A stretch of 57,438 nt of DNA, counting the filler, from Platydemus manokwari (taxonomy: Eukaryota), in the NCBI GenBank assembly GCA_037951405.1. It is 5 parts of 5 records of this genome, joined end to end, with 100 filler letters (N's around TTAATTAATTAA, not from the genome) between each part and the next. Parts side by side here need not be neighbours in the genome. Positions count along the whole stretch, not along the records: positions 9,522 to 20,725 come from JBBMOY010837756.1; 4 more parts are not named here. The stretch is one strand, 5' to 3'. Positions 9,522 through 20,725 of the stretch are shown here, in pieces (positions within the stretch are counted from its first letter, which is position 1; each line of letters opens with the position of its first letter). The position numbers were made by a program, and so were the translations under genes. Under the pieces are notes generated by a model. It did not search any database, was not told where the DNA came from, and saw only the letters and a program-made list of their open reading frames with translations.

Positions 9522-9778
9522 TGTATTTTATTAATACTACTTCGATTATTCTATAATTTATGAGAACTACGAACTTTCTGAGATAAAAACGAGTGATTAC
9601 AGCCCCTGTGTCCTTTTATACAAATTTTAATATTAAGATTATATTTACTTTTTATTATTATTAATCCTGGGTTCTAATCACCTGTGTAGTAATGATGTGA
9701 ATAACTAATACAACATATAACCATGTATTCCAGGATAATTTGGAATCAAACAACAATAATCCTTCAGAAATTGTCGAA

Positions 9779-10909
9779 ATGACAACTGATCAATACGATG
9801 AACAAGTATATTTTCAGATAAGCTTTATTTGATCATTGATCCGAAACAGGTAATGATTCAAAATATGTTCTATCTGTTGGCATTAAAACACGATGAGTAT
9901 AGTGCAGGATTACTTATCCATTGTAGCTTTGGACATATGAAACCACTTGACCGAGTTCCTTCATTTACTCATCAAGATTCTATTAGAGATAATTCAATAG
10001 TCATAGAAAAGATTGAAGCGTGGTATCTTTGGAAATTTCCAATTGAGAAGCGAATAAAAATGCATAAACGAGGCGAATTGAATATCATGAAAGAATTAAA
10101 TATCGGCCAAGGATGCTTTTTCCGGTCTGATTCTAAACGATTGAATCCTTATGAAATTATTGCGAAATCTTCATCAGATTATTGTATAAAGTTTGATTTA
10201 CGCTCAAAAGTTTATTTTAATGATTTCTATATCAATCTTGACACCTGTTTCTGCAGAGAAAATCCTCCGTAATTAGAAAAGGAGTGGACGCATCTGAGAT
10301 TAAATTGACCAAGGTAAATATTTCAAATATTCGATTACTTTCTTAATAATATTATTGTATTATTGTATTATTATTATTTATTTATTATTTATTATAACCA
10401 TATTATTATTTTTTATCATAATTATTAATATAATCAATATATAAAAATATAAGTGAAATTTGACCAATCAAATTGATTATTTATAATCTCTATTTGGTCA
10501 TTATTTTCGGTAATATTTATTAATCCTGTGATATCCAAATTTGACAAAAAATATTTAATTAAAACGAAACAAATTATGCTTGTACAAGAATATTCAAATT
10601 TCAAGATAATAATACAATTGATGAATACATTACAATCAGAAGTTCAATCAAAAGCTACAATTATTTATTTATATTTGCCATTTTGTGACTAGATTTTCTT
10701 ATGTAGGGTTTTTGGAAATCTGCATCCAATAAGAGTCTGTTATATTTAATTGATTTAATAAATTATCTGTTTTTTATAGATCAGGTTGTCAAGAAGAATG
10801 GCAAGAATGATTTATAAATTATATTATTCGAGTTTTTAATTCAAAATTTGTTATTTAGATAAAGTCGGAAACATGTCCTTAGATCCGGGATTTACTAAAT
10901 ATGATCCAA
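9779..10909 (+). CDS. Probable 5' exons of the CAP-Gly/ANK/RING gene (CYLD N-terminus-like)
   Basis: Candidate exons 9779-9805, 9850-10209, 10257-10313, 10707-10734, 10780-10800 (GC donor) and 10859-10909 keep frame and end in phase 1, matching the exon at 12165 (total 966 codons). The peptide FYLL...IVIEKIEAWYLWKFPIEKRIKMHKRGELNIMKELNIGQGCFF resembles the CYLD region before CAP-Gly1 (recalled, not aligned). The true start and the exon-like stretches at 10960-11740 are unresolved. Confidence 0.5.
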
Positions 10910-11130
10910 GTACAATTTTTTGTCTAATAATAATAATTTGATGTACTTCGATTTTGAAGTGCAATGATTGACTTTCCTGAGGTTATCAGATCATTTAAAA
11001 AAAATTTCGATAAAAGTACTCGACAATTATTATCAATACTGTCGAAACCAAAATCCGATTACAACAAGCACTCAACAGTACGCTTAAGTTATAATAAAAT
11101 TAATTAAAATTATAAAATCATGAATTAGAG

Positions 11131-11365
11131 CAAGAGTGCGCAAACTAGGGGCGCGAAACATTATTTTGGGGCGTCTAAAATTTGATAAAATTATTAATTA
11201 ATAAAAAAGCATCATTTTAATTATATGTTGCTATGAAGAAGATATTTATTTCATTTAAATAGTACATCATATGGGAGTTATGACCTATTACGAGGCCCAT
11301 TTTTAGCGGCGTCAGTAGCTAATATAATAAAAATGGGGCCCAAATTAAAAGTTTGCGCAGCCCCG
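11131..11365. mobile_element. hAT-type MITE (235 bp) upstream of the first CAP-Gly exon
   Basis: 16-bp imperfect TIRs CAAGAGTGCGCAAACT / AGTTTGCGCAGCCCCG; flanks AATTAGAG and GATTAAAG match at 6/8 as a TSD. Confidence 0.7.
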
Positions 11366-12164
11366 GATTAAAGGTTTTATTTTATATTAAAGAGAAAAAA
11401 GACAATAACATAGACTTGTTCATAGACGAAATATTTGAATATTGCTCGATGAAATCGATTACTTTCATTACAAATCACTTAGTTAATCCACGTAGCAAAT
11501 TGAATCCGGTTTTTATTCGGATGACATTTTATGATCAAATATATTTCTATTCTCAATTCAATTCGTTCAAATATTTTAATAGCCTTTTCCAATCGATAAG
11601 TGGGTTTAGATTCTTTTTATTTTATTTAATTCTTATGGATGCTTAATAAAGATTTGACGCTTGGAAAAATTTGTTTCGCAATTTGTTCCTGTTGTTACAA
11701 TGAACTAATTTAGATTGCAAAACATCTATGTCATTTAAGTATTATTTTTCACATGTTAGTCACGTGTGACAATTGGTCACTTGATCGCAATGATTATTGA
11801 ACATGTTTAAGTCGTTTGTTTTGTTTTTGAAAACTGAAATATTCGGGGTTCATTTTATAATTTGGAGATGATAAATAAAACTAATTTTTAAATAATGTAA
11901 TTATTCCGATCATTATCATGCTTAAATTTAAGAATTTAATATGCTTATTATATTGTGAAATAAAAATTCCTTCAAAAATTAACAACAAACATTTAGCTTA
12001 TTCAAAATAAAATATTATAATTTGTGAATTTTTTTCAATACTTTTATCATTTCTGAAATTGTTTTTTAAAATGTAAATTTTTATTTTAATTTATTTCTTT
12101 ATTAATATTAAAATTATTATATTATTAATTATAGTTATTTAATTAAAATTTTAAATCACCTCAG

Positions 12165-15100
12165 ATATCCACATGAATGTAATCGATCCAGCGAGTGTAC
12201 TGTTAATTGAAAATGGATTGGAAATTAGAAAAATATTATTTATAAAAGTAAAATCAATTAAAAGAACTATTCGTGTAAGTTGGAGAGGTTGTATAAATGG
12301 GATATTGTGTAACGGATGTGAATTAGCGAATCCATCAGATTTTGGAACTGATGGAACTTTCGGTGGTCAAAAATTATTTGAATGCACTGCTGGAAAAGCT
12401 ATTCTCATTCCTGTTGATGAATTTCGCGATAGTTGTGAATCGAGTATGAAGTTTATTTTGTTGTTTTCTACCCGACAAATGGTATTTAGAAAATCACAAA
12501 GACTTAATGAAATCGGAAGGGTTTATGAAACGATTTCGAGGTGTTATCAAAAATATTAATCCCGAGGATACTTGTTGTATAGAATGGTTGATTAATATTA
12601 AAACTTGGCCTGAATTACAAGTAGGAGGTAAAGTTAAATTGAAAACTCAAGATATTCTTGGAACTTGTAAATGGATTGGATCGATAAATGGAAAAGAAGT
12701 TGTTGGCTTAGAGATGGTAAATCTAATTTTTTGTATTTTCTGGAACTCCTATATCGAGTCATATTGTTAGAACAGTGATAGTGATTGTAAGGGAATAATT
12801 GGTCAATCCTCACCTTTAGGTTTATTTAGTTGTTCGAACGAGAACGGGATTTTATTAACAGCTGATGGTGTAGTACACGGTAAGATTCGTTTATAAATTA
12901 TGGGAATAATAATAAAAATAATAATGATGTCTTTGTTTTTTGATATTTTCATGTGAGATCTTTAACTTTTAATTTTTATCGAATAATTGCATTTATGCGA
13001 TATGAATATTTTAAATAAATAAATAATGTGTTCTTTAAGAAGCTGATAAGAAAAAAGTAAAATTTATCTTGGACTCTTCTGAAATCGCTTCTGAGATTCA
13101 TATATTCAGACTTACACTTAAGAAGGCGCATACAATTAAAACAAGGAAAACCTATATACCTAATTGAACAGTAAGTTCGACAAATTTCCATTAATGCATC
13201 CGTATCCCTATTATCGTCATTATCTATATTAAACTATTTGGTTGGTGGTCGGTGGTTAATTTTAAATTTTACTGGTTCTAGTGGCTTCAGCAACTGGTGT
13301 GATGACCGCGCTGCTGGAAAGTCATTTGATTTTAAATTAATAACCGAGCACAAAGGAACTGAAAAATAATGAGGTGGTTATGAAAACCTGCTTTAATTAA
13401 CAGTCTATGATAAAACGACGAGCAAGATTTAACTGCTTGATATTATATTTTACAATGACGGCCGTTAATGAATTAGTATGATATAATGTTATGTTCTCAC
13501 GCGGTCTCTTGGTAGATAATAATTACGTTACTCTATGTAATGATCACTGAGTTTAAAATAAACATGCAAAATCTCAAAAATATTTATTAATTAAGAAAAA
13601 CAGAAATTCAACAGTTAATATTAAAAGAAAACACCAAAAATCTAAGTTAAATACCCCGTACCTCACCTCAATGATTAACAGGAAAATCAGTGGAACGGAC
13701 GAAGAGTTTGAATTACACAAAAGCGGAAGATATTAATTATCGACAAAGTAATATAATATGTGAACGATTATTAACTTTATGATTAACTATTAATTATTAA
13801 GAGTAAGCGTTTAAAAAGGTGATAATTATTATTTAAAAGATCCTTACTACTTTTCAAATTCCAAGTGATCAAAATAATTCCCGACGCTGCTGGCGCAATG
13901 AAATAATTTCCAATGGTATGATCGACGATCAAGAATAATGTAGTGCTCTGTCTCCAAAAATTAGGCTTGTGTATCTCCGCAAATAGTGAGGCTTTCTTAT
14001 CTTCGTCCGATTAGTCGCGTAAAAGTTTTCGAATCGAAATAACTTTCTTTGTGTTTTTCACCGTGTGTTATCATGGCGGCTCACATATGACCAGCGTTGG
14101 TATTTATAGGCGTCCGATCCTATTTACTTTCTCACGTCAATGGACTAAATTTAACTGATTGTTTTTCTCATAATTTTCCTTATTTGATCCAAGTTAACGG
14201 ATTATTTTCTCATGGTTTTATTTGGCCCACTTTGACTAATTATTTTCTCACGGTTTTTATTCAGTTATTTTCTCGTGCCTATTTTAATTAATCTAATTTA
14301 ACTTCATTTTGCACCTTTCATATTTTTATTATATTTTATTTATTTATTTTATTTACTTTTAATTTTGTTATTTAACTATTTATCCTAATTACCCTATTTT
14401 ACTCTATCGTTTTATTATTAATATTATTATCGATTTGCTCTGTCGATGTTCATCTCCCGAATTCACCTACTCCGTCCGCACACACAAATTTCACAATAAA
14501 AGCGGTTACATAACAATACCTTTTTTTAGCAAAATATTGAAACACAATAGTTAATTTTTTTCGCAAGCAAAAATCACACTGATTGTTTATTTTTGATATC
14601 AAACAAGAATCAAAATCAATTGTAACCCACAGTATCGAATAATTGTTTATGTCACAACTGGGGTTGATGCTGAAGCTACATAGTCCTCTGTTGGATATTT
14701 GTCCTCCTCGAGCACGCTTCTTTTTTTGGTCGGTCCATAATCAAGGTTTTTTGATAGGGTTATAGGCTATATGTGTATGTTTAATGTTTTGTGGTGCTAA
14801 ACTATGTATGTACAAAAAAATGTTTGGTCGTTATGCCAGGGGGTTGACCCAACATCTATATTTAGCATCAAAGTTGATGACTGTTGAAACTTTAAATGAT
14901 TCTTACAAAAATTGTTAACTACAAACTATTATTTATACTACCTAGATATAAGTTTATTATTACTGCTATTAATTGTTATAACTACTGCACGAATCAAATC
15001 AAATCAAAATTCGAATTTAAACACCAAAGGTATATTAAACAACAAATTACAAAATTGCACAATAAAACAATCCACTACTCTAAAGTTTTCTTTCGATTTC

Positions 15101-18100
15101 TTTGTAAAGTAATCGGTGTGAGCGAAAATCTCCAAGTACGATGTATTTTAAAGGGTGTGATTTATATTTAAAATTGAATTTTAATTAAGCGAATTTGTGA
15201 TCAATAAACCCTCTTTTTGATTTAAGCACAACAACATTTCTAATATTTTTTTAAGTTTACATTTATTGATAGAAAACCCAACATCCAATCAACAAATAAA
15301 AATAGAAACACCCCCGTCTAATTTTGATTATCAATTAATGACTTTATTCATAATATTTTCTCTCAAAATGATAAGAATTCGATTTGATATGATATCAATG
15401 ATATTCTAATTTTATAAAATTGGATTGATTTCAGATGTTAAGCGTGAAGATGTTCAATTTTCTGTGGATAAAATTGTCGATATCAATAAAATATTTTATG
15501 TGAAGTCTATGAATAATAGTAATGCTAACGAAATTAATTTGGGAGATCCTGTGATTTTTGAAATCGATAAGAAAGATTATATAGGGGAAGTTAAATGGAA
15601 AGGAATGGTCAATAATGAGAAATGCGTTGGTCTAGACATGGTCAGATTTGTCATGATAATATTTTTTCATAAATGTACAACATTTTAGGAGGATCGATTT
15701 GAGTTCGGAATGAATGGTGTCATCAAAGGAGATGTGAAATTCGATTGTTTGAAAGGTCATGGATTGATCACACCCTTATCAAATGCTGTATCATGTAATT
15801 AATTAATACATAACAATTCAGTTGGATATTATTATATTGTGTAGATGATTATAGGAATCGACTACCTGTGCTGGAATATGGATTTATAAATCCGAAAAAA
15901 TTTTTGAAATGTGAAGAAATTCGAAACAAATCACTTCTTAAACAAATGAATTTATTATGTGGCCGTTATGTATACGTTAGTTTGAAAATGAGAAATGATG
16001 AGATCAAAATGAAGGGTACATTGAGATGGATTGGTTTAATGAATGATGTACAAGTAGCAATTGTAGAACTGGTAGGATTAGTTCACGAGCGACTATAATT
16101 TTATTGGTTAATATTATGATATATAGAATCAAGATAATGAATTCGGAACAAATGGAATGTTTTGGAGAAATCAATTATTTAATGGAGACCAACGGTTTGT
16201 AGCAGTATCGTCCAATCAAGTTCAGAAATGTAAAATTGTCTTTTTAATGACCTTCGTGGATAAATGATTTTCTAATGAATTAGATGTTCCGTTTATACAA
16301 AAAGATATTCCCAAAGATACGCCAGCATTCCATGATGTATACATCAATTCGCCTGTCATCTATAATTTAGAGTCGAATGGCGTTGTAGAAGAGGCTTTTG
16401 GAACAATCAAATGGACCGGTGTGGATGAATATGGGAAATATTTCTATGGGCTAGAATTAGTATCTGTATTTTAACCAAATATAGCCTTTATGTTTTCGCT
16501 GTTAGGATGATATGATCGCTGAAGGAACTGATGGTGAATTTTCTGACCAGAAATTATTTCATTGTCAACCTGGTCATGGAATTTTAGTGCCTGTTGGAAA
16601 AGTAAATAAAAATTCCGCCCTTATGGAAGGTTTGATTCCAACCTATCAGAATATTTTAATCAATTAAAAATTTATTAATCAACTTTAAAAATCGATTGAA
16701 AAAATTAAAACAAATTATGTTATCACACCGAAATGACACCAGATCAAATAATCGATTTAAATCATAAATCCAAGCGATATTAATAATTTATCCGTAATTT
16801 CACAAAATACATTTTCATATCCTACTCAATGAAAATAAAGAATTTTTCAAAATAATATTGTAAATAGTAAAAATTGGAGGGATTGTTCGAGATATTGATA
16901 AAATGAAATGAAATCTTAAACAATACTCCAACAAATACTGATAATATAATAATATCTAGAACTATAGAAAACAATATTTATTTAAATAATTAAGACAATA
17001 TGTATATGAGAAATATAAAAAAACATCAATCGTCTGTAAATCTAAAAATTCTCAATGTTTTATAAAGAAATTTTCAATTTAAATGCATTATTAAATCCTT
17101 ATTAAATGTTTGATTTCTATCTTATAATTAAATAACTGTTTCAGTTGACTTATGAGTTACTGGTGGGTGTCTGAATTATATTGTTGAGTGAGATGAAATT
17201 CTGCAAAAAGAAAAGAAAATTTGCACCTTGGAACCCATGTTTAAGCACTTTTAACATTTGCTTGCCTACACAACCATACAGGCAATCATCGAATCATAGT
17301 GAAGTTAAATGTTAAACGACAATTGGAAAAAGGGGCATAACTACACAACAACGCATACATAGGGATTGATCAAACTCACTAATGCAAAAATTTGAAAACC
17401 CAATAGGAACATAGAAAAACAAATATCGAATCAAAATATGATTACAAAAAATTACACACAGATTGCGAATATAAAAATCGATGTAAAGATGGCCAACTGG
17501 CAGTTGGAAGCCAAGCTTTGGTTGATATTTTGTCCAGTATAATTTGGGTAAATGTATTGATTAGTGCATAAGATAATATATTATTTGCCTTCGAATTTGG
17601 AGTCAAAGTTTAATCAATTATTTGGAACTATTCAACAATATTAGTTGTACAAATAGGATATTGATTGAAAGACATACAGATTTTTGGAAAATGATTATTT
17701 GCGATATGATTAGGGAATTGGAGCATTAATTGCAAGTGTTGATATGATTTGTTAGTTTAAAGGTAATTGATCGTGATTTGTTAATAGATGCTCCTCACAA
17801 ATAGAATGTTGATACTAATTCAAAGATAAAATTTTGGCAATACTTCAAAGTCAAAAATTAGTGTTTCAATTCCCCAATAATATCGCAAATCACCGTTTTC
17901 CACCACAACCTCTTTTTTCGTCTATCTTTCAATCAATATCCTATTCGTACCATTAATATAATTCAGACACCAATCAGTAACTCGTGAATCATCATGAATG
18001 AAAAACTCGATTCCGTGAAAACGTTTCACTTCTCTGAAGAGGTTCGTTTCAAAACCTGCGGAATTCCATAAAAATGGCGTAAAACAATTTCCAGAAAGCT

Positions 18101-19315
18101 GTGGACCTTAAAAGTGACTATTTTCAACATTTCAGATTTACAGACGAACTATGTTTTGTTTATATTTCTCAATTTACATATTTCCTTTATTTGTTAACTA
18201 AATATTATTTTCTATCGGACAAAACTTTCCTATCAATCCCATATTGCGATTATTTATTTTATGTAATCTGACTTTTATGTTTATCAATATAAATATCAGT
18301 AAAATTATTTTTCGTTGATATTTTCATGACAAATGAAAAGTGAATAAATTCTATACTCAATTAGGAGAAAGCAATTTATTTAATCAATATTTTCTTGAAT
18401 TGATGAAGTATTCCACTAATCGTGAGCTGGAAGTACGGATTTTTAAAGATATCTTTAAAATGAAAAATAAAAGGTGTTCAAATATTGAATTAGATTAATT
18501 TAATTCAAATTATCAGGTTAATTAACTCACTTATTAGATGCACAGATCACCCTGTGAGACTTGATATTCACGAATATTTGCTTCCAATGCTAATAGAAGA
18601 ATCAAATGTTACATTTATTAGATTGGTTCTCAAAAATTGTGACTTAAGAAATGCCAGCAGTGAAGTTTGTTTGGACTTGGCAAATTATGGTTTTCAAATT
18701 GAAGAATGGGATATTTTCTGGACTGCATTGGATTCATGTGTGAACAAGAACGTTTTGTTAAATAATGGCGAAACGTTTCTCACTAATCTGATCAAGTTCA
18801 ACTGTTCAGAGGAATTTATTCTGGAAATTATTAGAAAAAATATTTTCGATTTACAAATGATTAATAGATTCGGTGAATCGGTTTTTGTATTGGCTTGTAA
18901 AATGGTGTTGCCATCGATCGTCGAGGAAGTTATTCCCAATTCTTTGAATTCAGCTCAAAAACGAGAAGTTACAAATCTTATTATTGATGCCAACGAGAGA
19001 CTTTCGAAATTGGTTCGAAATTTTAAATATCGTTTATAATTTATGGTTTATTATCAGGGTCAACCCTTGGATGACGTTTGGAGAATTTCTAAGCTGATTA
19101 ATAACACCGAAACCAGACAAATAATAGTAGAATTTTTATATTGATTTTTGTTTTATATCACTGCATAATAGGAATGTTCGATTTGCATGGGCGAAGAAAT
19201 AAACGTGGTTTTAGAATGTGGTCATATGTGCTGTGATATTTGTTCTGGAAAATTGACGAGTTGTCCTTTCTGTAAGAAAAATATTGGAAAAATCAAAAGG
19301 ATTTTTCTACCATGA
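12165..19315 (+). CDS. Core of a multi-exon gene: 5x CYLD-type CAP-Gly + ankyrin repeats + C-terminal C3HC4 RING (putative E3 ubiquitin ligase)
   Basis: Phase-consistent GT-AG exons: 12165-12443, 12490-12716, 12771-12879, 15435-15640, 15689-15794, 15845-16071, 16127-16229, 16284-16459, 16506-16629, 18365-18473, 18538 (or 18517)-19012, 19058-19126, 19172-19315; about 785 codons with no internal stops. CAP-Gly motifs include VSWRG..GCEL..FGTDGTFGGQKLFEC..AILIP and GTIKWTG..YGLEL|DDMIAEGTDGEFSDQKLFHCQPGHGILVP. Ankyrin-like: NGETFLTNLI and FGESVFVLAC. RING: CSICMGEEINVVLECGHMCCDICSGKLTSCPFCKKNIGKIKRIFLP*. AATAAA at 19391. Confidence 0.88.
13487..14515 (-). mobile_element. Probable solo LTR (about 1.03 kb) antisense within an intron
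   Basis: Termini TGTTATGT...ACATAACA (8-bp inverted); flanks ATAA/ATAC. On the minus strand, imperfect repeats (14120-14280) precede the TATA box CCTATAAATA (14110-14101). Confidence 0.55.
17142..17996. mobile_element. Foldback/MITE with about 130-bp inverted arms; left arm interrupted by an insertion
   Basis: 17144-17181 plus 17642-17731 form the reverse complement of 17856-17990 (e.g. GGTGTCTGAATTATAT and AATAGGATATTGATTGAAAGA). Confidence 0.7.
17182..17637 (+). mobile_element. 456-bp TG...CA element (solo LTR or Ginger-type) with 4-bp ATAT TSD; multicopy
   Basis: ATAT|TGTTGAG...TTCAACA|ATAT; the empty site is visible in the opposite foldback arm. Homologues at about 42280-42765 (inverted), 7462-7680 and 49588-49790. 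Confidence 0.7.
17997..18243 (+). mobile_element. Mariner 3' remnant
   Basis: Degenerate KRFTS..EV, FHKNGVKQ and FQKAVDLKSDYF (mariner C-terminus), followed by the TIR-like CGGACAAAACTTTCCTATCAATCCCATA. Confidence 0.6.
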
Positions 19316-20725
19316 TTAAACAGTGCTGGTTATTTTGATAAAACTTTTTATATTAAAAAATAATTGATAAGATATTGGGTTTTTATAAAAAATAAATATT
19401 TCAACAAATATTGATTCTATTTGGAATCAGTTCTAATCATTTCATTTTCTATCATTATTCAATGATTTATAATTTCAAATTTTTGGATTTGATATACGAT
19501 TTTATTAGGAACTGCTAGACTTCATGTTTTGTAAAAATCTATTCTTGAAACTCAATTCATTTTACAAATTATCTCAACCAGTAAATCTTTCGATTACAAC
19601 TATAAAAATAATATAATAATCAAGATTGTTATGAATATTTCTACATATTTAAATAAAACTACGTGTCCGTCAAAATATTGTAAATCACGTTTAAGGTAAA
19701 ATAATATAATCTATAAAAATTACTTCCGATTTTAAGTTGCATATTATAAACGAATGAAAATATGGTTGAACAGTGTGTGTCATCCCCAAACCCAGTCAGT
19801 TCCAGAAATGAGGTTTGGAAATCTAAAAAAGAGTCTATTTAGAAATTATTTAAGTTTATCAACTTTAAAAATTAAAGAAAATTTAATCATTGTATGTAGC
19901 CCATATTATGTAGTGTGGAAGCAAAATATAACATATTGAGAATATAACAATATAATTCTTAATTTAACAATGCACAATTATCGAATAATAATAATTGACA
20001 AATATATAATAGGCACAAAAAGATTAAATAATGATTAACAAATATCGATTAGTAAATAACAATTATTAGACAACAAATAATCAGGGTTTTTTAGTTAATT
20101 TTTTTAATTAATAGTTATTGTTTTGTATAGGATTTTAAAAGATCCTTGTGAAGAGAGCTGCAAAGTTCAGGTATTCGAGTTTATGATAGTTTGGACCCAA
20201 AGAGTCTAGCAACTATAACGACAAGATGAGCTGAGTTTGAAGGAGATTTTAGATGATTTGTGAATAAGTGATTGGACAAAGTCCAAGCCGCTTTTAATTA
20301 AATTGTTCATTGTTTGCCGCTACTACTATTTTAAAAGCCACACATTAAAATCAAACCGTAAAAAGTCAAGACACAATCAAATCTATTTTATATCCAAATA
20401 TTTTAACAAATATTTCTAATTTTACATTAATTTAATTTTTTATAAAATTAAATTAAATATGAATAATATTTGAATAAAATTTAAATAAAATGTGAATTAA
20501 AATTGTTTTGAATTAAATTGAAATTTAATTCATATAAAATATCTCACATTCATCAAAATTATCGTAATGAAATACATTTAAAATAATGAAAAAGTAATAA
20601 AATTAATTTTACATTGTTTAGGACTTTTTATAGGAAATAATTTCTCTTCTAATTTTGATCGGTAGTAATCGCTTTTATTTATTGGTACTTGACTCATCTG
20701 ACAATAATTTTACAGACTGTGAGAG

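Follow-up and report, generated by a model that had tools for sequence, protein, structure and literature searches.

The locus and its gene

We describe here a gene of Platydemus manokwari (GenBank assembly GCA_037951405.1) that appears to unite, in a single open frame, an array of CAP-Gly domains, an ankyrin module and a RING finger. The window, by which we mean the whole stretch of DNA that was analysed (57,438 nucleotides (nt), filler included), joins five parts of this genome end to end, and the gene lies in the piece at positions 9522–20725 (record JBBMOY010837756.1). The G+C content of this piece is about 28%, and its plus strand displays short open stretches alternating with GT...AG intervals of about 50 nt, which is why we read it as eukaryotic DNA. 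Splicing by hand 13 GT-AG exons located between 12165 and 19315 (+), with borders set from the sequence of the piece, gives one open frame of 790 codons that ends at a stop codon at 19313–19315. Stops would make up about 8% of random codons at 28% G+C, so that a frame of this length is not a product of chance. Read from its N-terminus, the product has five CAP-Gly repeats and a helical linker, then an ankyrin module of about four degenerate repeats; a short conserved segment leads to the RING at its C-terminus.

The full list of exons follows. A slash marks the splice site; L001 to L007 are sequences from other genomes or metagenomes, and P0027 and P0033 are related proteins, all considered below.

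12165–12443 (+): CAP-Gly repeat 1, whole, with GTDG and an N-terminal IDPxSVLxIE extension; 22.6 bits against Pfam CAP_GLY
12490–12716 (+): CAP-Gly repeat 2, N half, ending in GLEM at a phase-0 donor; spliced unit compared with the CAP-Gly domain of P0027
12771–12879 (+): CAP-Gly repeat 2, C half, with degenerate CKGIIG; phase-1 donor ACG/GTAAGA
15435–15640 (+): CAP-Gly repeat 3, N half; spliced unit aligned with the CAP-Gly domain of P0027 over the splice site
15689–15794 (+): CAP-Gly repeat 3, C half, with GMNG
15845–16071 (+): CAP-Gly repeat 4, N half
16127–16229 (+): CAP-Gly repeat 4, C half, with GTNG; the most degenerate repeat, without the conserved Cys
16284–16459 (+): CAP-Gly repeat 5, N half
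16506–16629 (+): CAP-Gly repeat 5, C half, with GTDG; phase-1 donor AAG/GTTTGA at 16629; CAP_GLY E 5.5e-5 for this half alone
18365–18473 (+): helical linker exon, NQYFLEL...KMKNKR, with a phase-1 acceptor and no ATG; kept in L001, L002, L003, L006 and L007
18517–19012 (+): degenerate ankyrin module of about four repeats, signature C..KN.LL.NGETFLTNL.K; recognized with phmmer, the ESM Atlas, AlphaFold and Foldseek
19058–19126 (+): short exon LINNTETRQI, directly before the RING; kept in L001, L002 and L003
19172–19315 (+): C-terminal C3HC4 RING (zf-C3HC4_3) with tail KRIFLP and stop at 19313–19315; Pfam 38.6 bits

Ten of the introns are 43–55 nt long. The remaining two measure 2555 nt (12880–15434) and 1735 nt (16630–18364), and both are joined in phase 1. 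Every repeat unit, as well as the ankyrin-RING block, starts at a phase-1 acceptor, as one would expect where symmetric modules have been shuffled or duplicated in tandem. An earlier note on this DNA had proposed an exon-shuffled chimaera; the phase-1 introns that bound the repeat units fit that idea and tandem duplication alike. For the ankyrin exon, donors at 19032 and 19013 were also tried and broke the frame, and the site retained, 19012/GTTCGA, leaves a 45-nt intron and agrees with the relatives.

The CAP-Gly array

At the position where a canonical domain has GKNDG, the motif that binds EEY/F tails, the five repeats read, in order, GTDG, CKGIIG, GMNG, GTNG and GTDG. GKNDG itself is found in none of the five; here the earlier note had read repeats 1, 3, 4 and 5 correctly. 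Repeat 1 is a single exon, while repeats 2 to 5 are each cut by a phase-0 intron placed right after the G-L-E-L/M strand. Scanning the six frames of the piece with a profile of all five repeats brings up no sixth copy, which sets their number at exactly five. The array presumably expanded through tandem duplication of a unit with phase-1 intron borders and an internal phase-0 intron.

Taken separately the repeats are modest matches to Pfam CAP_GLY (PF01302, gathering cut-off 26.5 bits), which was run on repeat 1 and on the separate halves of repeats 2 to 5. Repeat 1 stays below the cut-off (22.6 bits, E 1e-4), and the halves of the other repeats reach at most 23.5 bits (the C half of repeat 5) or give no match. 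Profile A5, made of the five repeats and two relatives, is far more telling: 27 of its 28 matches in the PDB at E < 1 are CAP-Gly chains, with CYLD CAP-Gly3 the best (E 2e-6), followed by dynactin and CYLD CAP-Gly1 (1e-4). When the unit is divided, the profile of the C half is nearest to CYLD CAP-Gly1, and that of the N half alone yields matches at chance level only. The CAP-Gly domain of P0027, which passes the Pfam cut-off (33.1 bits), recognizes the spliced units with 50.1 bits for repeat 3, 32.7 for repeat 5, 28.3 for repeat 1 and 27.7 for repeat 2. Splicing raises the scores in this comparison well beyond those of the exons taken separately, and this validates the junctions internal to the repeats. 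Among PDB sequences, repeat 1 finds CYLD CAP-Gly3 first (E 0.015). Its structural model is poor (predicted local distance difference test, pLDDT, 52.9); the first 18 Foldseek matches of this model are CAP-Gly domains, the top six being CYLD CAP-Gly3, 2 and 1. On whole-domain similarity of sequence, we take the five repeats to be CAP-Gly domains.

The linker, the ankyrin module and the RING

The phmmer matches of the ankyrin exon include long proteins with many ankyrin repeats, at E values as low as 1e-22. Its language-model neighbours in the ESM Atlas reach a score of 0.97, and the ten best neighbours with a Pfam assignment all belong to ankyrin families. AlphaFold models the exon as stacked helix pairs (pLDDT 79.5), and Foldseek matches this model to designed ankyrin repeat proteins (DARPins), to the ankyrin repeat clusters (ARCs) of tankyrase and to other ankyrin chains (probability 1.0, E 0.01–0.04). 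The corresponding modules of relatives score 18.8–24.2 bits against Pfam Ank_2, under its cut-off of 27.3. The predicted fold of 18517–19012 is that of ankyrin repeats.

The C3HC4 RING that had been read in the last exon passes the Pfam threshold for zf-C3HC4_3 (PF13920; 38.6 bits for a cut-off of 27) with its eight zinc ligands present, spaced C-x2-C-x11-C-x-H-x2-C-x2-C-x6-C-x2-C. This spacing is kept in L002, L003, L007 and P0033, and both the ligands and the tail are kept across relatives with an overall identity of about 50%. The nearest solved RINGs are those of MYLIP (E 7e-7), cIAP2 (1e-5), cIAP1, SIAH1, ML-IAP, MIB1 RING3 (4e-5) and XIAP. The likeness to Mind bomb put forward in the earlier note therefore goes part of the way: MIB1 RING3 does figure in this list, while MYLIP and the IAPs are nearer, and the gene has no MIB/HERC2 or ZZ domain. 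Most RINGs of the MYLIP, IAP, SIAH1 and MIB1 type act as dimers by way of a C-terminal tail that carries an aromatic residue.

How the parts are joined

The joint on which everything hinges is that between the last CAP-Gly exon and the linker. Donor 16629 and acceptor 18364/18365 are both in phase 1, and they join as G/GA, exactly as had been claimed. Exon 18365 has an acceptor, no ATG and an in-frame stop eight codons upstream, so that it needs a splice partner further upstream, and the repeat profile and a Pfam scan of open reading frames (ORFs) reveal no convincing coding content in the gap at 16630–18364. Read-through past donor 16629 would meet a stop at 16665–16667. Searched as a whole, the spliced peptide shows a gap-free alignment of 53 residues, of which 17 precede the junction, with L006 (E 1e-10) and with L007 (2e-9), where the open frame continues upstream of the linker without interruption. 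Reading the sequence of the piece in this way, we infer a single transcript over all parts.

The two long introns are as follows.

12880–15434 (+): intron of 2555 nt, phase 1, no recognizable coding content
16630–18364 (+): intron of 1735 nt, phase 1, holding a foldback/MITE-like element (miniature inverted-repeat transposable element); inverted repeats I1, I2, I3 and I5

Nested inverted-repeat arms run over 17017–18160 in the second of these introns (17017–47/18130–60, 17146–82/17955–91, 17638–77/17920–59 and 17685–731/17856–902), and the hairpin at 17630–17995 folds with z −5.9. From its sequence, the region looks like a foldback or MITE-like insertion, which would account for the unusual length of the intron. 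The left half of the element contains about 450 nt of extra sequence.

Inside the 2555-nt intron, a 38-nt unit occurs twice in tandem at 14180–14255, the copies being 79% alike, and the region around them (14022–14521) has a strongly negative GC skew. ORFs in the long introns, tRNA genes and Rfam families were sought in the piece on both sides of 14317–14374; these scans recovered no tRNA and no Rfam family, and the ORFs within the long introns and those downstream of the gene match no Pfam family.

Relatives in other genomes and metagenomes

The family is sparsely sampled, and what we have of it comes mostly as fragments. Three short metagenome contigs of a single ENA sample (L001, L002 and L003, sample ERZ27257134) code for ankyrin exons 47–53% identical to that of the window. 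Their ankyrin-RING copies are 55–68% identical to one another and 47–52% to that of the window, as expected either of a multigene family in one organism or of several related species in one sample. Two more contigs, L006 from ENA and L007 from JGI, match parts of the ankyrin exon with about 45–50% identity. The order linker, ankyrin module, RING is kept in L002, L003 and L007, and the LINNTETRQ exon in L002 and L003.

L004 comes from an NCBI assembly with 42% G+C. In this sequence the N half of a CAP-Gly domain ends at a phase-0 donor at the same position as in our gene. An intron of 46 nt separates this half from a single ORF that contains, in turn, a degenerate C half, the linker and the ankyrin module. 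In the upstream ORF of L004, a profile drawn from the window alone recognizes two CAP-Gly pieces, including the C half of a preceding repeat. In all, L004 has at least two CAP-Gly repeats directly before the ankyrin module. A second, distant genome thus shows CAP-Gly repeats followed by this module. Matching phases, the lack of a start in exon 18365, the foldback element in the gap and the relatives all speak for one gene that unites the array, the ankyrin module and the RING.

Other arrangements exist. P0027 has an ankyrin module with the NGE.F signature followed by a CAP-Gly domain in one ORF, and this domain is much like repeats 3 and 5. P0033 is an ankyrin-RING protein of 238 residues with the same ankyrin signature and without CAP-Gly. 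Comparing these module orders with that of the gene in the window, we see a family that combines three modules in several ways. Upstream of P0027 (L005, 1–240) there is an ORF fragment that would seem to resemble the C-terminus of a retrotransposon integrase, which, if right, suggests an animal as host of that contig.

Searches on a larger scale added little. A scan of JGI metagenomes gave one contig of 1.1 kb, and a scan of GTDB no relatives. The 5.8-billion word index, queried with exon 9820–10269, P0033 and P0027, returned the queries themselves only; its length rule hides long relatives, and sequence searches cannot query by architecture, so unnamed database entries with this architecture may exist. 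We found no description of a protein combining CAP-Gly and RING in the literature, and in the databases searched the domain order came up only in a few environmental fragments that carry no annotation.

The 5′ end

In the earlier note the gene started at 9779. That start was not confirmed: the frame of this ATG runs into a stop, and the sole GT...AG pair is 12 nt apart. The uninterrupted spliced frame that the note described holds from repeat 1 (12165) to the stop at 19313–19315. Upstream of repeat 1 we retain one feature.

9818–10269 (+): candidate upstream coding exon; open frame 9802–10269, 156 codons, phase-1 acceptor 9817/9818

This open frame is far longer than expected at 28% G+C and has no usable ATG; its length, too great for chance, together with its phase-1 acceptor makes it probably coding. 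It has no match in Pfam, in the ESM Atlas or among homologues, and by the five-repeat profile it is not a CAP-Gly domain. It contains an IDPxxV motif resembling the start of repeat 1. Two candidate phase-1 donors, 10183 and 10246, are both weak; donor scoring yields no convincing donor that would lead from 9802–10269 to 12165, and codon-bias scoring gives too weak a signal to place 5′ exons.

Between this exon and repeat 1, the G+C content rises locally at 11120–11370, where short complementary motifs stand about 200 nt apart (GCGCAAACT ... AGTTTGCGC, GGGGCG ... GGGGCC). A small inverted-repeat element, in a 5′ intron or intergenic region, is a possible reading.

One gene, several genes or a relic

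We consider it on balance likely that the locus is a single gene, with a product of at least 790 residues that displays five CAP-Gly domains, a linker, an ankyrin module, a conserved segment and a RING of the IAP/MYLIP/MIB type, and that would act as a single-subunit RING ubiquitin ligase (E3). A number of observations weigh against it. Before the junction at 16629, 4 of the 17 aligned residues are identical in L006 and L007, and this part finds no match when searched alone. The join over the 2555-nt intron has no comparative support among the relatives, and an ATG just upstream of repeat 3 could be the start of a shorter product. Neither start codon nor 5′ end was found within the piece; the piece begins only 300 nt upstream of the candidate 5′ exon, and the true start may therefore be off the contig. 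Repeat 4 is barely recognizable to the CAP-Gly domain of P0027 (9.8 bits), Pfam Ank models do not match the ankyrin exon of the window at E <= 0.01, and prediction of a RING homodimer gave neither support for a dimer nor evidence against it. The sole sequencing run that holds the stretch is apparently of DNA, and is not on record as RNA. Finally, when the ankyrin exon was searched against 1.84 billion representatives, only fragments and generic ankyrin proteins came up, and no annotated full-length homologue.

Would two or three adjacent genes do as well? There would then be a CAP-Gly-only protein ending by read-through at 16665, perhaps another one ending at 12892, and a separate ankyrin-RING gene with its first exon within 16630–18364. 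The disputed joins are precisely the only long introns of a gene whose other introns have 43–55 nt, read-through stops come close behind both donors, and short ankyrin-RING proteins without CAP-Gly do exist, as P0033 testifies. Yet exon 18365 demands a phase-1 partner upstream, for which the gap offers no convincing coding first exon, the C half, linker and ankyrin module share one ORF in relatives, and the foldback insertion accounts for the length of the intron. We regard such a split as unlikely. Still less probable, to our mind, is that the locus is a relic, a paralogue from an expanded family that has fallen silent or is decaying, its frame still open and its expression lost. In favour of this are possible insertions in the two long introns, the degenerate state of repeats 2 and 4, a start codon that was not found and the several paralogue-like fragments in one sample. 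Against it, a frame of 790 codons whose 13 exons have kept their splice sites would not stay open for long without selection, and every ligand of the RING is intact. We take the gene to be real, and its product to be probably a functional RING E3, as far as one can judge from sequence.

Origin of the modules

Where the modules came from is less easily said. The earlier note had the array descend from CYLD. In favour of this view, no solved structure is nearer to repeat 1 than CYLD CAP-Gly3; the CYLD scores are nevertheless marginal, and repeat 1 drives them. The alternative is that the gene, real as it is, drew its modules from the CLIP3/CLIP4 (CLIPR-59) lineage, which already pairs ankyrin repeats with CAP-Gly domains, and that the array was subsequently expanded, the order rearranged and an IAP-type RING added. 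P0027 is the principal witness here. It displays the NGE.F ankyrin signature and a CAP-Gly domain like repeats 3 and 5; its ORF, ankyrin first and CAP-Gly next, has CLIP3 as its nearest named clusters (0.95, with 179 shared features); and its CAP-Gly domain finds dynactin first, not CYLD. The position of P0027 beside CLIP3 clusters makes a CLIP3/4-like ancestry at least as plausible as descent from CYLD. On the other side, CYLD CAP-Gly3 leads by about 5 bits in the rankings of repeat 1 and of the family profile, the pattern TDG...LF.C resembles that of CYLD, CLIP3/4 have their domains in the reverse order of our gene, and an atlas score gives a lead rather than an alignment. As a complete scenario, this derivation from CLIP3/CLIP4 deserves to be kept in mind, while we would hesitate to adopt it.

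What the protein might do

With a single gene as the preferred reading, the product would be a RING E3 made of one subunit. Its RING would recruit a charged ubiquitin-conjugating enzyme (E2), probably as a dimer, like its nearest solved relatives, through the conserved aromatic residue three positions from the C-terminus. The ankyrin module and the CAP-Gly array would choose the substrate or the location. CAP-Gly domains are mainly known as readers of microtubule tails. In the present case the loss of GKNDG from all five repeats makes binding of EEY/F tails (tubulin, EB1) unlikely as their main job. By analogy with CYLD, it is possible that they bind other peptides, or ubiquitin. To our knowledge, CYLD is the only protein where CAP-Gly domains serve as ubiquitin- and NEMO-binding modules of a deubiquitinase.

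It is tempting to go further and to imagine a 'reader-writer' ligase, in which CYLD-type CAP-Gly domains read existing ubiquitin chains, or the partners of CYLD, and a dimeric RING extends or rebuilds these chains, an evolutionary counterpart of the CYLD deubiquitinase. We think this improbable. Ubiquitin binding by the array, an argument from analogy, is itself a hypothesis to which we give a poor chance, and involvement in NF-kB signalling or antagonism of CYLD is conjecture.

What is new here is the combination of a CAP-Gly array, an ankyrin module and a RING, in a small and sparsely sampled family; modular RING E3s are a known kind. In invertebrate genomes, IAP-type RINGs are often found in lineage-specific fusions with binding modules of various kinds. 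Since such fusions are frequent and the family is known from fragments, we give the finding modest weight for now. If the reading is true, a ligase with five CYLD-like non-canonical CAP-Gly domains would mean that this module can target the addition of ubiquitin as well as its removal. The gene would also offer a natural test of what CAP-Gly domains devoid of GKNDG bind.

Comparison with known systems

With CYLD the gene shares an N-terminal array of non-canonical CAP-Gly domains where TDG replaces KNDG. It differs in what this array is attached to: CYLD has three CAP-Gly domains and a USP domain, whereas five CAP-Gly domains precede an ankyrin module and a RING in the window, and no exon or frame of the piece matches a USP domain. 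CAP-Gly2 and CAP-Gly3 of CYLD bind the Ile44 patch of ubiquitin, and six other CAP-Gly proteins tested do not (PMC8511506). Val487 and Arg488, by which CYLD CAP-Gly3 contacts ubiquitin, are not kept in repeat 1, as judged from a weak alignment.

CLIP3 and CLIP4 (CLIPR-59; three ankyrin repeats and two CAP-Gly domains) resemble the product in that a single protein carries both ankyrin repeats and CAP-Gly domains. There, however, the ankyrin repeats precede canonical CAP-Gly domains and no RING is present, while here the order is reversed, the five CAP-Gly domains lack GKNDG and a RING ends the protein. When profile A5 is compared with the PDB, the CAP-Gly chains of CLIP3/4 rank below those of CYLD and dynactin.

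The RING, finally, brings the product close to the IAPs, MYLIP (IDOL) and Mind bomb, with which it shares the subtype (zf-C3HC4_3), the position at the extreme C-terminus and a hydrophobic tail. In contrast to these proteins, the product has a single RING and, by Pfam, none of the BIR, FERM, MIB/HERC2, ZZ or REP domains. Mind bomb is also similar in placing ankyrin repeats before its RINGs; MIB1 and MIB2, for their part, add MIB/HERC2 and ZZ domains and have two or three RINGs, where the gene of the window has an ankyrin module and one RING.

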